IMG/VR virus record: IMGVR_UViG_3300043436_004687
Span: 124,001-188,000 of that record
Direction: 5' to 3' (one strand)
DNA length: 64,000 bases
Made by a program: the position numbers and the translations under genes. Numbering within the stretch: position 1 is the first letter of the stretch; every line of letters starts with the position of its first letter. This document shows, piece by piece, positions 5,602-26,343 of the stretch. Below the pieces are notes generated by a model, which was given only the letters and a program-made list of their open reading frames with translations, made no database searches and had not been told where the DNA came from.

Positions 5602-7008
5602 TTAATAATTATTATCTATATTTGAGGTTATTATGATTGGAATTATTTCACTTATTGCGGTTGAATTAAATTCATCACCTAAAATATTCTTATAAACTTT
5701 ATTATTTACTACCCTATAATAAAGTTTGTCGCCCAACCCACCACTAAGAGTTAATTTACCATTATAAACTTTATTAGCGATTTCATAATTAACGATAACT
5801 TCATCAATTATATTCGAAAAAGTTTTTGTGTTTGATAATTGTAAATTAAAATAACCATTATTTTTATTAGGATGTTTTTCAATGGTCCAATAGATTTCTA
5901 ATTCTTTTTTGTTAACATTACCAACAAAAGTTGGATTTCCATTATAAACTATATTTACAACATCACCGAATTCTAAATTAACCTCTAATATAATTCGTTT
6001 ATTGTTAGAAGTTGATAAATGATAATCTAACCCATTAGCCAAAACATTACCATTTAAAGACAATAAAAAATCATTACCCTTATTAGGTGTAACATCTAAA
6101 TATATTTCATGTTTAGATGTTGTGGTGTTATAATAAAATTTATTCACACCCTGGTTATTAATTGAACCACTTAAAATTGATTTATTAATGGAAAACGAAT
6201 CTATTACTAAACCATTTTTACCACCCTTACCCACATAAAATAAAGTTACCACATCATTTTCTTGAGCTTGATTGAATAAATTAATTTGGTTATTATTAAC
6301 TATAGAAAAATCTAAATCTTGTGCTAAAACATTACCATTCAAGGTAACAATTGGGTTACCTATTAGACCGTTATCTAAAAAAAATGTTGTTTCACCAGAA
6401 GAAATAAAAGAAATTGAATTTAAAGAACCTATAGATTTTTGAGAATTAGGTGTTAAACTAAAATTAGGTGTGCTTGCCGAATAAATAACAGCAAAATAAT
6501 TATCAAATACATTATTATATAAATAAAATTCAGAGTCATTAGAAAATGATGAGGATTTATTAATATAACCCAATCTATTTAATATGTTAGTACAATTAGG
6601 GGTTAACCAATTAGGTTTAATTATAAATTCAGAATCTTCAATTATGTTTAAAGATGTAAACCCACTTAAAATATTAGTTGATTTAAATTCACTATACTGA
6701 TAATCCTCAGATATAAAAAAATTAGGGTGATTAAAACTCAAATTATTATAATCAAATTTAAAAATACTATAATTAAAAATAGATTCATCTCTTAAATCAC
6801 TTAAATTTTGATTAAAATTAAAAATTAATGATAAATCAAAATTTGGTGAGTTTATAAAATAAACTGATTCATCACTTTCTGTCATCCCACTAATTAATTT
6901 AGTTGCCCCACTAATTTCAAAATTAGGAATTTGGAAGGTGCAGATATCTGAGCTAATATTGTAATTAACATTTTCAATTTGATCATATATTATAGCTTGA
7001 TTTCTCAT
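5602..7008 (-). CDS. putative structural protein
   Basis: 468 aa; repeated LNGNVLAxxLD(F/Y) beta modules; within structural operon. Confidence 0.5.
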   Translation of the reverse strand: MRNQAIIYDQIENVNYNISSDICTFQIPNFEISGATKLISGMTESDESVYFINSPNFDLSLIFNFNQNLSDLRDESIFNYSIFKFDYNNLSFNHPNFFISEDYQYSEFKSTNILSGFTSLNIIEDSEFIIKPNWLTPNCTNILNRLGYINKSSSFSNDSEFYLYNNVFDNYFAVIYSASTPNFSLTPNSQKSIGSLNSISFISSGETTFFLDNGLIGNPIVTLNGNVLAQDLDFSIVNNNQINLFNQAQENDVVTLFYVGKGGKNGLVIDSFSINKSILSGSINNQGVNKFYYNTTTSKHEIYLDVTPNKGNDFLLSLNGNVLANGLDYHLSTSNNKRIILEVNLEFGDVVNIVYNGNPTFVGNVNKKELEIYWTIEKHPNKNNGYFNLQLSNTKTFSNIIDEVIVNYEIANKVYNGKLTLSGGLGDKLYYRVVNNKVYKNILGDEFNSTAISEIIPIIITSNIDNNY

Positions 7009-7226
7009 TAAAAACTTATATTTAATTTTATGATATTATTACTCAATGATTTCAAGCCAATAGGGTAAATAGTTTGATTTAAAATAATTGATCCAACCCC
7101 AATTTTTTTATTTTCTAAATGTATAAAAAAATTAGACGAATCTATTTTTGAATCAAGACCAAAAAAATGAATATCACTATTTAATGGTTTTTCTATTTTA
7201 CTATTAACTTCTTTTAATAACCTCAT
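7008..7226 (-). CDS. hypothetical protein
   Basis: 72-aa ORF tightly packed between neighbours; stop overlaps the next start. Confidence 0.5.
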   Translation of the reverse strand: MRLLKEVNSKIEKPLNSDIHFFGLDSKIDSSNFFIHLENKKIGVGSIILNQTIYPIGLKSLSNNIIKLNISF

Positions 7227-7228
7227 TA

Positions 7229-9073
7229 TTAAATATTATTTAAAATTATTTCATCATTAACAAAATTAGGGTCACCTAAAATCGTAATTTTACCTAAAAA
7301 TTCAGACCCATCATCTATTTGATAGATATAAACCGAATTACATTTTTCAGTACTATTATCTATTTTTTTAGTTATTTCTATATTTTCATAACCTATTATA
7401 GGATAACTAATTATTCGTTCACAACTAAATAAACTATATTTTTTATAAACGAATTTATTATTATCGAAAATTGTATTACCAAATTTATATGTTGAACCCC
7501 ATAAAGTGGTTGATGGGATTAATTGTTCAACTAAATCAACCCAATTGTAATTAGTGTTAATTATATAATCAAATATTAAATCATAATTATAACCATTACT
7601 TTGAATATTACAGTTATTTAAACTAGCTACATAACCATCAAACAATTTTCTTAATACTGGATAAACACTTATAGTTTTTCTTGATTTAACATCAATAAAA
7701 TTAGAATTAATTATTTTATTGAAGTTTTCAACATTAATAAAATCTTTATAACCTAAGATGAAATCATCAAGTAAATGACGAGTACAAGAATTAGTATCAA
7801 TATAATTCATTACATCAAATTCTATGGCTCTAGCCATATTTAAATTTAAGTTTATTTCTTTTGAATTTAAGGCTAATTTACTATTATTAATTTCATAATT
7901 CGTTTCACTGTTTACTAAATCAAAAATTCTATTTTCATAAACTTCATTTACAACCCAACTTTTCTTATTATCAATAACCTTTTCTAATTTAAAATTAGGG
8001 CAATTATTTATTTCTAATGAATTAATTTCAACATAATTACATAATTTATCTATCTTTACATTATCTATTAACATAGATATTTCAATACCTATGTTGTCTA
8101 AATTAAACCCTATTTTTATTTCCTCATTTTTAATTAAATTAATTAAAGCTGGGTCAGTTATAGTTAAATTAAAATTATACCAATTTGAATTTAATGAATC
8201 GGGATTTAAAACTAAATTATAAACATTTAACAATTGATTAGTTAAATTATTGATTAAGGAATTACAGTCACCAATAATTTTAATACCACTATTAGGTAAC
8301 TGCAACTTATCTAATAAATTTAAACCATTAAATAGAGTATTTGTATAAACAACATCCATTTTTTTTGGTGATTCGAAAATATAACCCAATGTAGTTTCAC
8401 TAAGTTCTCTATTTACCAATCTTTCTAAACTCATTGTTATTGAAATACCACTCAATGAATTAATTACATTATTAACACCATTTTGACTTATCAATTGATT
8501 ACAATTAACCTCAATTAGATAATCAAAATTAATATTTAATGTACATTCTTCCGAATTATTAACATCAAAAATACTACCCTCAGAACCATTTGTGTTTAAA
8601 TACAATTTTGAGTTTAAATCAGAACAATCATCAACCCAAAAACACTTATTTAAATTTGGATTAAATCTAAACCCTAAATTGGAACAGCAAACACTACTCA
8701 AAGAAATATTAGTTGATCCATTATAAATAACACCATCATCTTTAAATACATAACTATCCATTAAATCACCATTCGTATCATTACAGACTGGTAAATCATT
8801 AACTGAAAAATCAAAAATAAAAGAATAAATACCAGTATCATTTAATATTAATTGTATAGACAATTCTTTACTATTAATCAAAGTATATTGGTGATTATTT
8901 AAATTTAAAATGTCAAAATTACTTTCGAAGATTAATTCATTACCCAATAATTTAAAACCAAAATCATATATTTTAGCATTATTCGTAAAATCCCAGGCAT
9001 TGAACCAAGACCCATTTATTAATTTATATAAATTAGTGTTTGAATCGAAAATAATATGTGAAGAAAAATTCAT
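7229..9073 (-). CDS. putative structural protein with Cys-rich motif
   Basis: 614 aa; CCSNLGF...CFW motif; WVDLVEQLIPSTTLW segment; operon context. Confidence 0.55.
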   Translation of the reverse strand: MNFSSHIIFDSNTNLYKLINGSWFNAWDFTNNAKIYDFGFKLLGNELIFESNFDILNLNNHQYTLINSKELSIQLILNDTGIYSFIFDFSVNDLPVCNDTNGDLMDSYVFKDDGVIYNGSTNISLSSVCCSNLGFRFNPNLNKCFWVDDCSDLNSKLYLNTNGSEGSIFDVNNSEECTLNINFDYLIEVNCNQLISQNGVNNVINSLSGISITMSLERLVNRELSETTLGYIFESPKKMDVVYTNTLFNGLNLLDKLQLPNSGIKIIGDCNSLINNLTNQLLNVYNLVLNPDSLNSNWYNFNLTITDPALINLIKNEEIKIGFNLDNIGIEISMLIDNVKIDKLCNYVEINSLEINNCPNFKLEKVIDNKKSWVVNEVYENRIFDLVNSETNYEINNSKLALNSKEINLNLNMARAIEFDVMNYIDTNSCTRHLLDDFILGYKDFINVENFNKIINSNFIDVKSRKTISVYPVLRKLFDGYVASLNNCNIQSNGYNYDLIFDYIINTNYNWVDLVEQLIPSTTLWGSTYKFGNTIFDNNKFVYKKYSLFSCERIISYPIIGYENIEITKKIDNSTEKCNSVYIYQIDDGSEFLGKITILGDPNFVNDEIILNNI

Positions 9074-21087: not shown

Positions 21088-21467
21088 TATATTTTAATAA
21101 TTAAACTATCTTTATTTTCAAAAATATCATCAGTAATAACATACTCTAATTTAACAATTGCAGTATAATCTTCCTCTTCGGAAGCTTCAACCAATATATT
21201 ATTTACCTTTAAATTAGGAATGAATTTAGTAAGTGATGTGACAACTTCATTTCTAATTTCTTCATAAGAAATTGAATCACTTTGTTCAAAAATATAATTT
21301 CTTAAATTAGTCCCAAAATCTGGTAAATAATAACGTTCACCCTTATTTGTTAAAATAATATGCATTATATCAGCTTTAATAGCCTCAGCACTTGTTTTAT
21401 TCAAATTTAAAAAATCACCAGTTGGACTATTTTTAAATGGGAAATCAATATTGATATTTTTAAGCAT
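21087..21467 (-). CDS. baseplate wedge / sheath initiator (T4 gp25-like)
   Basis: ILTNKGERYYLPDFGTNL motif. Confidence 0.85.
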   Translation of the reverse strand: MLKNINIDFPFKNSPTGDFLNLNKTSAEAIKADIMHIILTNKGERYYLPDFGTNLRNYIFEQSDSISYEEIRNEVVTSLTKFIPNLKVNNILVEASEEEDYTAIVKLEYVITDDIFENKDSLIIKI

Positions 21468-21530
21468 TATTCTTTTAATTATAAATAGAATATAACTATT
21501 TTTTTATAATTTTAAATGCTTATAAAAATA

Positions 21531-21558
21531 AAAAAGAGAGGTGTTTACCTCTCTTTTT
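21531..21558 (-). terminator. intrinsic terminator after nrdA-C
   Basis: AAAAAGAGAGGT-GTTT-ACCTCTCTTTTT perfect hairpin. Confidence 0.85.
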
Positions 21559-21559
21559 G

Positions 21560-22648
21560 TTAAGTTGAACAACCGAAACAATCAAATTGACTGTCTTTAG
21601 GTTTTTCAATTGTTTTATTATCTAACACACCTAGTTTATTATTAGATTCTAATTTTGATTTAGTTCTAGTATAATAAACACCCGTTTTTAAACCACCTTT
21701 CCAAGCATACATTAAAGCACTTGATATCTTAATATATTTTGCATCGGAATGATACATATTTAAAGATTGAGATTGATCTATAAATTTATTTCTAATTATG
21801 GCTAATTCTAATAAAGTTTTTTGAGATATTTCCCAAACATCTTTATATCTAAATCTAATATCTTCAGGAATTTCTAAAATATTTTGAACACTACCCTTAT
21901 TTTTTAAGAATTTATCTTTAATATCTTGATTCCATAAACCTAAATCAATAAGTTCTTTAACTAAATATTTATTTATCACTAAAAATTCACCTTGACCAAC
22001 TCTTCTGGTAAACATATTTGAAGTTGGTGGTTCAAAAGATTCGAAAACACCTAACAAAATAGCGCTTGAAGCTGTTGGCATATTACCGAGGAATAAACTA
22101 TTAACGAGTCTTATAGGTAAACCATCTTTAATTGGTGACCATCCATTTATATAGGTTTCACCTCTTTCATATTTACTACCACCCCAGGCTGGATATACTT
22201 TATTAAATTTCTCAGCTAATCTATTAGATTCTGAAACAGCTGCTTTATACATAATTTCAGAAATCTGACTATTCCATTGTTTTGCTTCATCAGATTCAAA
22301 AGATATTTTTTTCTTAGCAAAAAAATCGGCCATACCAGCTACGCCAATGGCTATAGCCCTTTGATCTTCACCAGCATTTTTACTCCATTCATCACTCCAT
22401 TTATTTTTATCAATAACTTTATTTAAAGCTTTAGTTAATATTCTAGTACTATTTTCAATACTATCTAATGTGGAATGGTTTGCTAAATTTATTGAACCTA
22501 AACAACATTGTGGTGTGTATCGAGGCTTTGAAGCTTGCATAATTTCACAATTATGAACTAAAACATTATTAGCATAAAAGTTATTAGTATTAGCTACTTG
22601 GATGTCATATACATCCATTTTTTTATTTATTTTATTAATTTTAATCAT
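21560..22648 (-). CDS. nrdA: ribonucleotide reductase alpha subunit, C-terminal fragment, led by split-intein C part
   Basis: After VLVHN comes CEIMQ; CCLGSINL, MPTASSA, DQSQS, GLKTGVYY, terminal CFGCST. Confidence 0.92.
   Translation of the reverse strand: MIKINKINKKMDVYDIQVANTNNFYANNVLVHNCEIMQASKPRYTPQCCLGSINLANHSTLDSIENSTRILTKALNKVIDKNKWSDEWSKNAGEDQRAIAIGVAGMADFFAKKKISFESDEAKQWNSQISEIMYKAAVSESNRLAEKFNKVYPAWGGSKYERGETYINGWSPIKDGLPIRLVNSLFLGNMPTASSAILLGVFESFEPPTSNMFTRRVGQGEFLVINKYLVKELIDLGLWNQDIKDKFLKNKGSVQNILEIPEDIRFRYKDVWEISQKTLLELAIIRNKFIDQSQSLNMYHSDAKYIKISSALMYAWKGGLKTGVYYTRTKSKLESNNKLGVLDNKTIEKPKDSQFDCFGCST
22550..22648 (-). mobile_element. split intein, C part (33 aa)
   Basis: MIKINKINKKMDVYDIQVANTNNFYANNVLVHN|C: block F and terminal His-Asn followed by Cys+1. 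Confidence 0.92.
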
Positions 22649-22656
22649 ATTTATTT

Positions 22657-23856
22657 TTAATAGTTAACATATTCAAATTTAAATCCTTTGTAGGTTTTAT
22701 TTCTTCCTTTACATACAGCTAACACAGATGTTATTTTACCATCTATATATTCAGCAGCTAATTTTAATGAATCAAATACAAGTTCATTATCATCTTTATC
22801 AATTCTTTTGACTTTTCTTTGGTTATTACCAATTTTAATATCAAATGTGTAATCTTTATCTTCCCATCTAAAAATTTTGGTCTTCTGATTATTGTTTTTA
22901 CATTTTCGCCTAATAACTGTTGAATTAAATCCAGTGGCTTCACTGGCATCAAAAACATTATTAAAAAAAAATTCATTTTCACTACTAATACATTCCTTAT
23001 AGTAAACACCTTTAGTTATTCTAACAAGACCATTTTCATTTTTTTTAAAACCTTTAGGTGAATCATTTACTGGTTTAACATAATCAGGTCTTTTAGTTTT
23101 AACTAACACTAATTCAGTATTAAGATATTTAAAAAAATAACCATTATAACTACCACCATATAAAATACATCTATACACAAGGCTTTTAGTTTTAATATTG
23201 TATTTTTTAATTAAATCAATTATATTTAAAATATCAATTTCTTCTAAAGTTTTAGCATCAATAACAACTATTTTATTCATTGGTCTAATTTTAGCGTTTT
23301 CTTTCATTTTATTTATAGTTTCTTTACTAGCTTTTCTACCTTTATTCCAATGAACCCCATTTAATTTAGATAAATAAGATGGGTTATTTATTAACGGTCT
23401 ACCATACATTGGGTTATTTACCCCAATAGTATTAAATTTATGTTTTTCTCTAATTTCTTCTTTTCTAGGATTATTACTGAATGTGTCACCTCCAGAACCA
23501 CCTATAACTATATTAGTTAATATACCAGAATCAGAATATCTACCATAGTAATTAATTAATTCTTTTTCAACTCTAAAAGCATTTTCTTCATTATCAGTTT
23601 CAAATACAATACTAAAATTTGGTTTAAAACCTAATATTATTAATTTTTTAATAATATTAGTTTTATGTGGATTACTTTTAGATCTTTTATTATTTAAAAT
23701 TGTATCTGAATAATGAGTTAAATGTCTCTGATTTTTATTTTTAGCTTCATAATCACCCTTACCAACATAAAAAGGTTTATAACTTATTTTAGAATAATTA
23801 TTACTATAATTACCTTCTACTCTATCATCTAATAAAATGTATACATAATATCTCAT
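22657..23856 (-). CDS. free-standing GIY-YIG-family homing endonuclease with NUMOD-type DNA-binding repeats (start revised to MRYYVY)
   Basis: YYVYILLDDR...PFYVGKG...R...AFRVEKELI...LTN; NNPMYGR (NUMOD3-like); C-terminal FDSLKLAAEYI...VCKGRNKTYKGFKF (NUMOD1-like). Confidence 0.8.
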   Translation of the reverse strand: MRYYVYILLDDRVEGNYSNNYSKISYKPFYVGKGDYEAKNKNQRHLTHYSDTILNNKRSKSNPHKTNIIKKLIILGFKPNFSIVFETDNEENAFRVEKELINYYGRYSDSGILTNIVIGGSGGDTFSNNPRKEEIREKHKFNTIGVNNPMYGRPLINNPSYLSKLNGVHWNKGRKASKETINKMKENAKIRPMNKIVVIDAKTLEEIDILNIIDLIKKYNIKTKSLVYRCILYGGSYNGYFFKYLNTELVLVKTKRPDYVKPVNDSPKGFKKNENGLVRITKGVYYKECISSENEFFFNNVFDASEATGFNSTVIRRKCKNNNQKTKIFRWEDKDYTFDIKIGNNQRKVKRIDKDDNELVFDSLKLAAEYIDGKITSVLAVCKGRNKTYKGFKFEYVNY

Positions 23857-23859
23857 ATT

Positions 23860-23910
23860 AATAAATATGCAGTACATAGTATAAAATACACAACACACTG
23901 CATATTTATT
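23860..23910 (-). promoter_or_regulatory. 14-bp hairpin over the endonuclease initiation region
   Basis: AATAAATATGCAGT (23860-23873) / ACTGCATATTTATT (23897-23910) perfect inverted repeat ending 3 nt before the ATG. Confidence 0.65.
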
Positions 23911-23913
23911 TTT

Positions 23914-25386
23914 TTAATTAAAATTTACATCTAATTCATCATCCTCAAGTAACTCACAAGCCATGACATAACCTCTATTTTTAGTAAATATTCTATGGTC
24001 AGGTGTACAAATTAATTTAATACCTTTTTTATCATCAATTATTTCAAGTACTTCAGCGTTTTCTTTTGTTTTAATAGCAGCTAATATTGGTTGAAACGTA
24101 TTATTTTGACTCAAAACTTGTAAATTATTATCTTTAAACCTACCAACAATATTTTCCATACTTACTTTTTCAATACCACCATTTTCATTCATTATCGTTA
24201 TATTAGTTTCACCACCTAAACAACAAAGATTTGATTGTGATATTGTCCCAATATTATCTTGCATATTAATTCTATTAGCGTTATCTTTAAACATAACGTA
24301 AGGTTTACCACTTTCAACTTGTGATTTTATAATAGCATCTAAAATATCTTTTGGGTTAACTTTTTTACCTAAACCTAAATCCACTGCTTTTTGATATTCA
24401 ACTTCAAACTCATCACCCCATATAGTATGGAATGGTTTTAACCCATTTTTAATAATATCATTAGGACAAAACAAATACCAATCCTTACCTTGCTCAAGAT
24501 TTTTCATGAATAAATCATTAACAATGGCAGCTGTAAATAAATCTCTAGTCCTCATTTGTTCATCACCAACAGGTAAAGTTAATTCTAAGAAATCAAATAT
24601 ATCTCTATGCCAAACACTTAAATATAATGCACAACTACCAGATCTATCACCTTGCTTATAAAATCTCATTTTAGATTGTACCATATCAGCTAATCTAACA
24701 ATACCACCAGCATTATTGTTAAAAGATGAAACCATACTTTCTTTACTTCTAAGAGGATCAATAAGTAAACCAATACCAGAACCTTCTTTAGAACCAAAAG
24801 CTATTTTTGTTAGTGTATTTTCTATCTCATCTATACTATCACCTTCTAACATCGTTAGATTACAACTAATCATACCATTTCTACTATCTATACCAGCGTT
24901 AGTATACGTAGGAGTTGCAAAATTAATTTTTTTACTTTCTAACTCATTTAATAATTCATTTTTATCTTCATAATTATCCTCATATAAAAAAGAAGAAACT
25001 CTATTATACATGCATGAAGGTAATTCTATAGGTGTTTTTTTATTTTCTTTTTTAGAATACTTACTTAAAAAAGTAGTTGCAGCAAAAAAATCATAAGTTA
25101 AATCAACATCTTTTAATGGTTTATTAATCAATTTTGATTGTCTACTTAAAAGTATTCTACCACCTAATAAAGAATAATCTGGATGGTCTAATATTTTATC
25201 AGCAGATTTAAAAGCAATTATTTCATCAATTTCAGTTGTTGAAATCTCATCCGAAATTAAAGGAATTACTTCCTGAAATAATAAATCAGAATCTATTTGT
25301 AAACCTTTAGCTTGATCTTTAATTCTAGTTAAAAGTTTGTTTGGCATAAATGGTTGTAAAACACCACTTCTTTTTTTTATTTTCAT
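23914..25386 (-). CDS. nrdA: ribonucleotide reductase alpha subunit, N-terminal fragment, ending in split-intein N part
   Basis: ATP cone MKIKKRSG; ATPTYTNAG, MISC, GSGIG, QGDRSGS, ESGKPY, SQSNLC. Confidence 0.92.
   Translation of the reverse strand: MKIKKRSGVLQPFMPNKLLTRIKDQAKGLQIDSDLLFQEVIPLISDEISTTEIDEIIAFKSADKILDHPDYSLLGGRILLSRQSKLINKPLKDVDLTYDFFAATTFLSKYSKKENKKTPIELPSCMYNRVSSFLYEDNYEDKNELLNELESKKINFATPTYTNAGIDSRNGMISCNLTMLEGDSIDEIENTLTKIAFGSKEGSGIGLLIDPLRSKESMVSSFNNNAGGIVRLADMVQSKMRFYKQGDRSGSCALYLSVWHRDIFDFLELTLPVGDEQMRTRDLFTAAIVNDLFMKNLEQGKDWYLFCPNDIIKNGLKPFHTIWGDEFEVEYQKAVDLGLGKKVNPKDILDAIIKSQVESGKPYVMFKDNANRINMQDNIGTISQSNLCCLGGETNITIMNENGGIEKVSMENIVGRFKDNNLQVLSQNNTFQPILAAIKTKENAEVLEIIDDKKGIKLICTPDHRIFTKNRGYVMACELLEDDELDVNFN
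23917..24222 (-). mobile_element. split intein, N part (102 aa)
   Basis: CLGGETNI (block A) ... LICTPDHRIFT (block B TxxH) ... ELLEDDEL, then stop. Confidence 0.92.
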
Positions 25387-25389
25387 ATA

Positions 25390-26343
25390 TTAAAAATCTG
25401 AATCATATAAACCTTCGTTAGTTGTTGGTATTTCCAACCTTGTGTATTCACCATCCCTTTTCTCAAAGAAATTATTTTTAGCTGATAAGCCAATCCTACT
25501 CATATAATCTAATGAGTTATTTACATTAAATGATTTATCACAACCAAAATCACTTAACACAATATCAGTAACATATTGAACATATTGAACCATCATATTT
25601 TTTGTTAAACCTTGTAAACCATCTGGTAAACTTTCTTCAATGAAAATCTTTTCAGTTTCATAACATTCCATGATAATATTTGAAATCTCACTCTTACTTA
25701 TTTTATATTCGTCTTTAACATAATTCTTATATAAATTCAAAGCAAATTCATAATGAGCTGTTTCATCTTTTAAAATTAATTCATTCATACCACCTAAACC
25801 AGGCATTTTATTTCTACTTCTAAACCAAAAAACACCAGAAAAAACTGAACTGAAACTAATTCCCTCAACACAAGCAAAAGCAATCAATCTATGAGAAAAA
25901 GATGGGTGTTCTATCCACTTCTCAGCCCATGTAGCTTTCTTAAAAACAGCTGGGTTAGTTTCCATGGAATTGAATAATTGTTCCTTTTCAATGTTATTTT
26001 TGATGTAAGTATCAATTAATAATGAATATCCATTAGCATGAACTTGCTCAATAAATGTTTGGTGACCGTAGAAGTATTGAGCTTCTAATATGTCAACTTC
26101 ATTTAGAAAATTGGTTGCTATATTATCAATAACTAAACCATCTGAAATAGCAAAAAAGGCTAAAATATTTTTTAAATATTCTTTTTCATTATCTTTTAAA
26201 TCGTTGAATTGATCTTTACTAAGATCGATTTCTTCGGCCACCCACGTTTGGGATTCAGCTTTTTTATACATTTCCCACAAATCACCATGAGTAATTGGGA
26301 AAATAGAATATCTTTTTTTTACGTCTTTATTTTTTAAATACAT
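25390..26343 (-). CDS. nrdB: ribonucleotide reductase beta subunit (class Ia)
   Basis: WVAEEIDLSKD, FFAISDG, EQVHANGY, VEGISFS, DETAH, NFFE motifs. Confidence 0.93.
   Translation of the reverse strand: MYLKNKDVKKRYSIFPITHGDLWEMYKKAESQTWVAEEIDLSKDQFNDLKDNEKEYLKNILAFFAISDGLVIDNIATNFLNEVDILEAQYFYGHQTFIEQVHANGYSLLIDTYIKNNIEKEQLFNSMETNPAVFKKATWAEKWIEHPSFSHRLIAFACVEGISFSSVFSGVFWFRSRNKMPGLGGMNELILKDETAHYEFALNLYKNYVKDEYKISKSEISNIIMECYETEKIFIEESLPDGLQGLTKNMMVQYVQYVTDIVLSDFGCDKSFNVNNSLDYMSRIGLSAKNNFFEKRDGEYTRLEIPTTNEGLYDSDF

Follow-up and report, generated by a model that had tools for sequence, protein, structure and literature searches.

The 64,000-nt window of IMGVR_UViG_3300043436_004687 analysed here (part of a 339,635-bp IMG/VR contig; G+C 26.4%) carries at 21560-25386, the feature under study, an nrdA gene for the large subunit of class I ribonucleotide reductase (RNR) which is broken in two by the halves of a split intein, with a homing endonuclease gene lying between them. 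All coordinates are those of the window unless a locus is named. The genes nrdB, gene 1 (the N-terminal part of NrdA, or N-extein, followed by the N-intein), the endonuclease gene and gene 2 (the C-intein followed by the C-extein) are consecutive on the minus strand and end in a terminator-like hairpin; the nrdB stop precedes the start of gene 1 by 3 nt, within one operon-like string. An earlier note on this DNA had described an N-intein of 102 amino acids (aa), a C-intein of 33 aa, a joined NrdA of 717 aa and the attendant splicing motifs, all of which are borne out by coordinates and counts. The details of that note that were checked all proved correct, with corrections needed only to the strand, which is minus, and to the start of the endonuclease, which is placed at 23856.

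Gene 1 encodes an ATP-cone, the all-alpha domain of RNR and that part of the RNR barrel which ends at Pfam profile position 213, and its N-extein ends in SQSNLC, the last cysteine being the thiyl-radical cysteine of the N-x-C-x-E loop. The C-extein of gene 2 begins with CEIMQASKP, the first residue of which is the +1 cysteine (Cys+1), and ends with the C-terminal CFGC pair. The Pfam barrel profile is matched at positions 2-213 in gene 1 (E 1e-60) and 213-523 in gene 2 (E 4e-76), and the NCBIfam model NrdE_NrdA at 2-295 and 295-616 respectively. Because these profiles abut, and because the intein halves match NrdJ-1 and the NCBIfam model intein_Cterm as described below, the break in NrdA is not a product of chance. 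The N-extein of 388 and the C-extein of 329 residues together make up 717 aa, and the N-x-C-x-E loop is whole only once they are joined, N-L-C being supplied by gene 1 and C-E by gene 2. NrdE_NrdA scores 221 and 261 bits on the two gene pieces as against 83 and 96 bits for NrdJ_Z; with the class I profiles far ahead, together with the ATP cone, the adjacent nrdB and the C-terminal cysteine pair, the host enzyme is a class I NrdA.

The insertion point was defined by comparison with unbroken relatives. In a survey of the 80 best viral loci (L numbers below) nrdA is unbroken in 66, interrupted by an intein of the window's type (class A) in nine and interrupted by an intein which starts one residue earlier (class B) in five. 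Relatives without the intein, 77-80% identical to the window's NrdA and 716-720 aa in length, read SNLCIEI at the site and, set against the C-extein, SNLCIEIMQASKP, while the junction in the window reads SNLC, C...HN, CEI, which places the insertion directly C-terminal of the thiyl-radical cysteine. In nucleotide sequence, what sets the occupied site apart from the empty one is essentially a change of ATT to TGT at +1; the isoleucine native to this position was thus replaced by cysteine, the nucleophile on which splicing depends. Three cysteines are found in a row at the junction, namely the radical cysteine at -1, Cys1 of the intein and Cys+1.

The two intein halves belong to different genes, the N-intein having a stop codon and the C-intein a start codon of its own. 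The N-intein starts with CLGGET (block A, providing Cys1), contains CTPDH (block B, T-x-x-H) and ends in the acidic tail ELLEDDELDVNFN, which is followed by the stop, while the C-intein presents a basic head, MIKINKINKK, a block F of DVYDIQV and a block G of VLVHN, with Cys+1 next. The class 1 splicing residues are all present: Cys1, T-x-x-H, the block F aspartate, the His-Asn pair and Cys+1. The net charge is -6 for the N-intein (-4 in its last 25 residues) and +2 for the C-intein (+3 in its first 12 residues). For both halves the best match in the PDB is the NrdJ-1 intein (8UBS/9OMB), with E 2.9e-15 for the N-intein and E 1.5e-4 for the C-intein, and in both, identical residues make up about half of the aligned positions, as counted by eye on the PDB alignments. 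P0421, an intein from an RNR with an NPC loop, matches NrdJ-1 at E 2.7e-16, comparable to the window N-intein. NrdJ-1 itself derives from the Lake Gatun metagenome of the Global Ocean Sampling (GOS) collection (PMC2677866), is represented by the structures 8UBS and 9OMB, and is experimentally an ultra-fast trans-splicing intein for which Ser+1 is obligate (bioRxiv 10.64898/2026.03.03.709324). Of its two accelerator tyrosines in the N-half, one is retained in the window intein, as is the penultimate histidine. NCBIfam intein_Cterm recognizes the C-intein at 23.6 bits with a cut-off of 15.6. Judged by these matches, the window intein is a split intein of the NrdJ-1 family and not a new type.

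The residues expected to take part in splicing are under evident constraint. Cys1 does not vary among the N-inteins compared, 29 of class A and 14 of class B, and C1, CT.DH and NRGY are invariant across the 29 class A N-intein clusters; the C-intein of relatives is always 33 aa long with a conserved start, and all C-inteins listed end in HN followed by C or S. The ratio of non-synonymous to synonymous substitution rates (dN/dS) is 0.22-0.31 for the N-intein and 0.06-0.14 for the C-intein, and values for the intein halves and the endonuclease together fall within 0.06-0.32. From the homology to NrdJ-1, the intact motifs and this purifying selection we infer that the window halves undergo protein trans-splicing.

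The open reading frame (ORF) between the halves extends from 23898 to 22657. Its most likely start is the ATG at 23856, since six loci agree without exception in this codon and its surroundings and the part of the ORF upstream of it varies; translation from here gives a protein of 399 aa beginning MRYYVYILLDD. An N-terminal GIY-YIG nuclease is followed by C-terminal DNA-binding modules of NUMOD or helix-turn-helix (HTH)-like type: GIY-YIG is matched by 26 of the 30 family members (best E 7e-10) and I-HmuI NUMOD-like modules by 28 of the 30, with NUMOD1 and NUMOD3 found in seven each, and the family profile matches the C-terminal DNA-binding domain of I-HmuI (1U3E) at E 7e-5. The protein also matches PHROG 314, 'homing endonuclease' (E 6e-13), and a comparison of the family with NCBIfam gave no match. 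Y30, G32, K33, R44, H48, E97 and N115 are invariant in the family. All endonuclease relatives whose context was looked up, down to about 42% identity, lie between fractured nrdA halves, after a helicase gene and nrdB. From the 66 empty alleles a candidate target of CAATCnAAyyTnTGy/ATyGAr can be proposed, the slash marking the insertion point. The 3' end of the endonuclease gene is separated from the C-intein gene by 8 nt in the window, without overlap, and does overlap it in the relative L081. Readthrough of the N-intein stop codon into the endonuclease was considered and rejected, as the two ORFs share a frame in the window but not in L002 or L003.

A stem-loop occupies the 57 nt that separate the stop codon of gene 1 from the start of the endonuclease gene; its 3' arm stops 3 nt short of the ATG at 23856. 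Its predicted stability of -22.5 kcal/mol (z -3.5) was reached by none of 200 shuffled sequences. Four loci preserve the structure, showing one compensatory change of a G-C to an A-U pair and several wobble changes, and it is absent or weak in the distant loci L081 and L083. The stem-loop probably limits translation of the endonuclease.

Table 1. Features of the fractured nrdA locus in the window
Feature	Position	Strand	Evidence or remark
nrdB, RNR small subunit, 317 aa	25390..26343	-	Pfam Ribonuc_red_sm, E 1.7e-81
Gene 1 (N-extein + N-intein), 490 aa	25386..23914	-	Stop codon 23914-23916
nrdA N-extein, residues 1-388	24223..25386	-	Pfam ATP-cone, lgN, lgC positions 2-213; tblastn coordinates
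N-intein, 102 aa + stop	23914..24222	-	PDB NrdJ-1 intein 8UBS/9OMB
Stem-loop RNA, gene 1 stop to endonuclease start	23860..23910	-	Minimum free energy -22.5 kcal/mol
Free-standing homing endonuclease gene, 399 aa	22657..23856	-	GIY-YIG + NUMOD/I-HmuI-like modules
Gene 2 (C-intein + C-extein), 362 aa	22648..21560	-	ATG start at 22648
C-intein, 33 aa	22550..22648	-	PDB NrdJ-1; NCBIfam intein_Cterm
nrdA C-extein, 329 aa + stop	21560..22549	-	Pfam lgC positions 213-523
Intrinsic-terminator-like hairpin with T run, right after gene 2	21521..21558 (hairpin 21558..21531)	-	12-pair stem, then T tail

The three-gene cassette of the window recurs in many independent public metagenomic phage contigs, and its relatives differ in how much of the endonuclease they keep. 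The class A endonuclease gene is complete in five loci; L008:4198-4455 holds an 85-codon remnant corresponding to the 3' DNA-binding end, L006:6404-6560 a remnant of about 33 codons with half of the leader hairpin, and in L005:7474-7492 the gene has gone, leaving 19 nt between the intein halves. Since the halves are intact in L005, L006 and L008 despite the loss or decay of the endonuclease gene, the split intein outlives its endonuclease partner, as has likewise been described for gp41-7 (PMC2677866). Inteins and endonucleases of the same families also interrupt nrdA at this point in a second NrdA clade, whose exteins share 42-44% identity with those of the window.

The same NrdA clade as the window's also harbours class B, in the loci L010-L014 (for example L011:7162-8690). 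Here the site reads SNL, C-I/V-S-E-D-S...H-N, C-I-E-I, so that the intein lies before the thiyl-radical cysteine, at the NrdA insertion point of PMC2677866, where splicing is scarless. N-inteins of the two classes are 44% identical and their C-inteins 50-59%. The class B endonuclease is unrelated to that of class A: about 345 aa long, it weakly matches TnsA-like and resolvase-like models of PD-(D/E)xK type, which would fit the 'Vsr-like' family of PMC2677866. Members of the window's intein family with serine at +1 (VHN, SEI) were seen in the second, more distant NrdA clade, in L083:4697-4800, P0274, P0281 and P0291. As serine is native after the thiyl-radical cysteine in that clade, splicing would be scarless there, whereas the clade of the window needed the change from isoleucine to cysteine.

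A search with the N-intein of 1.84 billion representative proteins returned 385 clusters at E <=1e-3. Domain scans of the ten best matches identified nine as RNR large subunits, the majority with a visible break at barrel position 212-213, and among 149 retrieved matches the insertion lies before the thiyl-radical cysteine in 74 and after it in eight. In a poorly resolved tree of the N-inteins the sequences labelled 'after' are clustered, and a single origin for them is not rejected (approximately unbiased test, p-AU 0.73).

Other interruptions were noted in the retrieved NrdA sequences. Besides the split intein at the active site, P0017 and P0054 have a mini-intein in the N-extein, contiguous and about 156 aa long, at GMIS, C...HN, CNLT; the corresponding site in the window, between S174 and C175 of gene 1 (about 24862-24867), is intact. 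In L007:8739-9686 and in P0056 a second N-intein-like tail follows MPTAS and the remainder of the C-extein lies about 1.7 kb downstream, leaving nrdA in three pieces, and L043, which lacks the split at the active site, has a break in this part of the C-extein. The equivalent position in the window, between S194 and S195 of gene 2 in GNMPTASSAILLG (about 22064-22069), is likewise intact. Downstream of the fractured nrdA of L083, at 6343-7968 on the minus strand of that locus, a 541-aa ORF with DUF723 repeats stands beside a gp25-like gene and may be another mobile nuclease-like gene.

Taken together, the locus is best read as a mobile cassette of a split intein and a GIY-YIG endonuclease that fractures a class I nrdA directly after the thiyl-radical cysteine, a reading to which we assign a probability of about 0.87. 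The genes would be co-transcribed and translated as three proteins, and the acidic N-intein would associate with the basic C-intein. Cys1 would then form a thioester with the carbonyl of Cys388, the acyl group would be transferred to Cys+1, Asn33 of the C-intein would cyclize and an S-to-N shift would yield a normal peptide bond. The expected product is a 717-aa NrdA with an N-L-C-C-E loop, the active site being present in the spliced protein only. The endonuclease would in turn cut the intein-less nrdA alleles (SNLC/IEI) of co-infecting relatives, and the occupied allele, serving as template for repair, would pass on the cassette along with the Cys+1 codon. As to the remaining claims of the earlier note, the fracture of nrdA at the N-x-C-x-E loop by a split intein is upheld by the abutting profiles, by SNLCIEI in intein-less relatives and by the cassette in other metagenomes; the assignment of the intervening gene to GIY-YIG agrees with the 26 matching family members; the acidic tail and basic head which it described correspond to the charges given above for the last 25 and first 12 residues; and the comparison with known split inteins which it proposed identifies NrdJ-1 as the closest solved structure for both halves.

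Several observations weigh against this reading or against parts of it. The Pfam model LEM-3_GIY-YIG reaches only a marginal 26.7 bits on the window endonuclease (cut-off 27), and Pfam Intein_splicing and NCBIfam intein_Nterm fall just below their curated cut-offs on the N-intein. The accelerator Tyr83 of NrdJ-1 is replaced by phenylalanine in the window when the alignment is mapped onto the published numbering. Splicing, RNR activity of the N-L-C-C-E loop and cleavage by the endonuclease are all steps that we infer. The T4 late-promoter motif TATAAATA is found 31 times in the window with 34 expected, and is therefore not enriched, nor is it intact in the hairpin, where the arm reads AATAAATA; on both counts a timing of the Aeh1 type, with late-only expression of the endonuclease, is unsupported. 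Finally, synonymous divergence (dS) between the window and L002 and L003 is 0.5-0.7 for the cassette and 1.3-1.65 for the exteins, which is suggestive of transfer of the cassette after divergence of the host genes. It is no more than suggestive of a recent transfer because the extein dS is near saturation and cassette and exteins hardly differ in amino acid identity.

Other explanations of the broken gene can be envisaged. A working split NrdA that functions without ligation is documented in Aeromonas phage Aeh1 (Gibb and Edgell, PMC3045599; cited in PMC2677866), and charge-complementary intein halves would draw the fragments of the window enzyme together, serving as association domains only. 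Such a non-covalent assembly is nevertheless very improbable in our estimation. Aeh1 has no intein, whereas here every splicing residue is present and invariant; the break falls inside a five-residue catalytic loop, where 135 intein residues would have to stay in the active site; and the native isoleucine has given way to cysteine at +1, a change needed for splicing only. There is similarly little probability that nrdA, destroyed by a selfish element, is decaying and non-functional, with an intein that no longer splices in a phage that uses the RNR of its host. Despite the fact that the insert-bearing nrdA of Campylobacter phages is thought to be degenerating (PMC3653736) and that the endonuclease genes of L005, L006 and L008 are visibly decaying, none of the exteins and intein halves is truncated, all evolve under purifying selection (dN/dS 0.06-0.31), the split persists across many diverged clusters with the halves intact even after endonuclease loss, and the neighbouring nrdB is intact.

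RNA splicing of the halves, by a group I or II intron containing the endonuclease ORF, had been named in the earlier note as one outcome that would overturn its reading, and group I introns with GIY-YIG endonucleases are indeed frequent in phage RNR genes (PMC3653736). A search with Rfam found no intron at the gathering threshold in the window and none at E <=1 in 21400-25500, which excludes RNA splicing as far as Rfam shows. In addition, intein protein motifs that have stop and start codons of their own flank each of the two junctions, and in L005 the 19 nt between the halves leave no room for an intron and likewise exclude RNA splicing. An error of assembly is contradicted by the same layout in contigs from independent metagenomes. 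We regard an intron or an artefact as extremely improbable, and the mobile split-intein cassette remains our preferred explanation.

The setting of the locus is that of a large phage. The window encodes a T4-like baseplate, sheath, helicase and recombinase, and the source is an uncultured, AT-rich, T4-like jumbo myophage. A megablast search of GenBank phages with the 4.1-kb region gave no match; the closest GenBank proteins are 33-38% identical, with NrdA and the sheath protein at <=35-38% to any record. Genes of the window run head to tail on one strand and show no evident Shine-Dalgarno sequence, for example at the starts 25386, 23856 and 22648, and a scan for sigma-70 promoters gave fewer matches than in shuffled sequence and so tells nothing. 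Among cultured phages the nearest NrdA proteins are those of Cellulophaga and Tenacibaculum phages (33-35% identity), which, together with the lack of evident Shine-Dalgarno sequences and the low G+C content, hints at a Bacteroidota host.

The locus is a complete example of a fractured essential gene, and its relatives show the empty site, the full cassette, the decaying endonuclease and the lone split intein. Two sister inteins moreover lie one residue apart in a single NrdA clade, each accompanied by a different endonuclease family. The current understanding of split inteins is unchanged by all this: the earlier note was right to regard fractured phage genes with split inteins as already known, the arrangement having been described in 2009 (PMC2677866), while its idea that the pair may serve as a new, perhaps orthogonal, ligation tool finds no support in that form, since the window intein is homologous to NrdJ-1, shares its insertion point and belongs to a large family of RNR active-site split inteins. 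For the same reason cross-reaction with NrdJ-1 is plausible, and membership of the NrdJ-1 family makes a truly orthogonal pair unlikely, so that orthogonality must be considered doubtful. A more ambitious proposal would see in the window intein a natural Cys+1 sister of the Ser+1 intein NrdJ-1, providing a fast ligation tool with another junction requirement and perhaps orthogonality, with splicing and the supply of deoxynucleoside triphosphates redox-gated through the cysteines; we think it improbable that this holds. The uncharacterized natural homologues of NrdJ-1 with cysteine or serine at +1 could, on the other hand, widen the choice of junctions.

Comparison with known systems places the locus between several that share some of its features. 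The nrdA of Aeh1 (PMC3045599) is likewise T4-like, in two genes, with a free-standing endonuclease between them and a hairpin before the endonuclease start; it differs in having no intein, in its non-covalently associated fragments, in the HNH family of its endonuclease, mobE, and in a hairpin that holds the TATAAATA late promoter. The cyanobacterial DnaE inteins Npu and Ssp resemble that of the window as split class 1 inteins with Cys1 and Cys+1, an acidic N-half, a basic C-half and about 102 + 35 aa. They belong, however, to a DnaE host in a cellular genome, with halves that are encoded far apart and without an endonuclease gene, and in the PDB search with the N-intein no DnaE-type intein matched significantly, an engineered consensus N-fragment alone appearing at E 0.11. 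The window endonuclease shares with I-TevI and Seg-type enzymes the GIY-YIG Tyr, Tyr, Arg, His, Glu and Asn residues and a C-terminus of NUMOD1, NUMOD3 or HTH-like modules, although its family is only distantly related to them.

Nine fractured RNR loci were described by Dassa et al. (2009), in which the inteins NrdA-1 to NrdA-7 lie directly before the thiyl-radical cysteine and those of NrdJ-1 and NrdJ-2 one residue later (PMC2677866). The same study reported hairpins in 15 of 16 endonuclease leaders, linked to translational repression, with the TATAAATA late-promoter element inside the hairpin in ten of the 16 loci, and an endonuclease 3' end overlapping the C-intein gene in 15 loci (PMC2677866); NrdA-2 was tested later (Pinto et al., 2020; PMC7090010). 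NrdA-1 to NrdA-7 share with the window a class I NrdA on phage-like contigs, the order of N-extein and N-intein, endonuclease, C-intein and C-extein, and a hairpin in the 5' untranslated region of the endonuclease. They use the thiyl-radical cysteine itself as +1 residue, in contrast to the window intein, which is inserted one residue later and needs the change from isoleucine to cysteine. The literature searched yielded no account of the NrdJ-type insertion point in a class I NrdA with Cys+1, nor of a single NrdA clade in which both insertion points coexist and are paired with distinct endonuclease families. Closest to the window intein is NrdJ-1, which agrees with it in the insertion after the thiyl-radical cysteine, the canonical split site, Cys1, the penultimate histidine and terminal asparagine, the fractured gene and the pairing of an acidic N-half with a basic C-half. 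The host of NrdJ-1 is a class II NrdJ with an NPC loop, whereas that of the window is a class I NrdA with an SNLC loop, and the +1 residue is serine in the former and cysteine in the latter; the NrdJ-1 chain in the PDB ends ...H-A-S-E-I, at the same insertion point as HN, CEI of the window.

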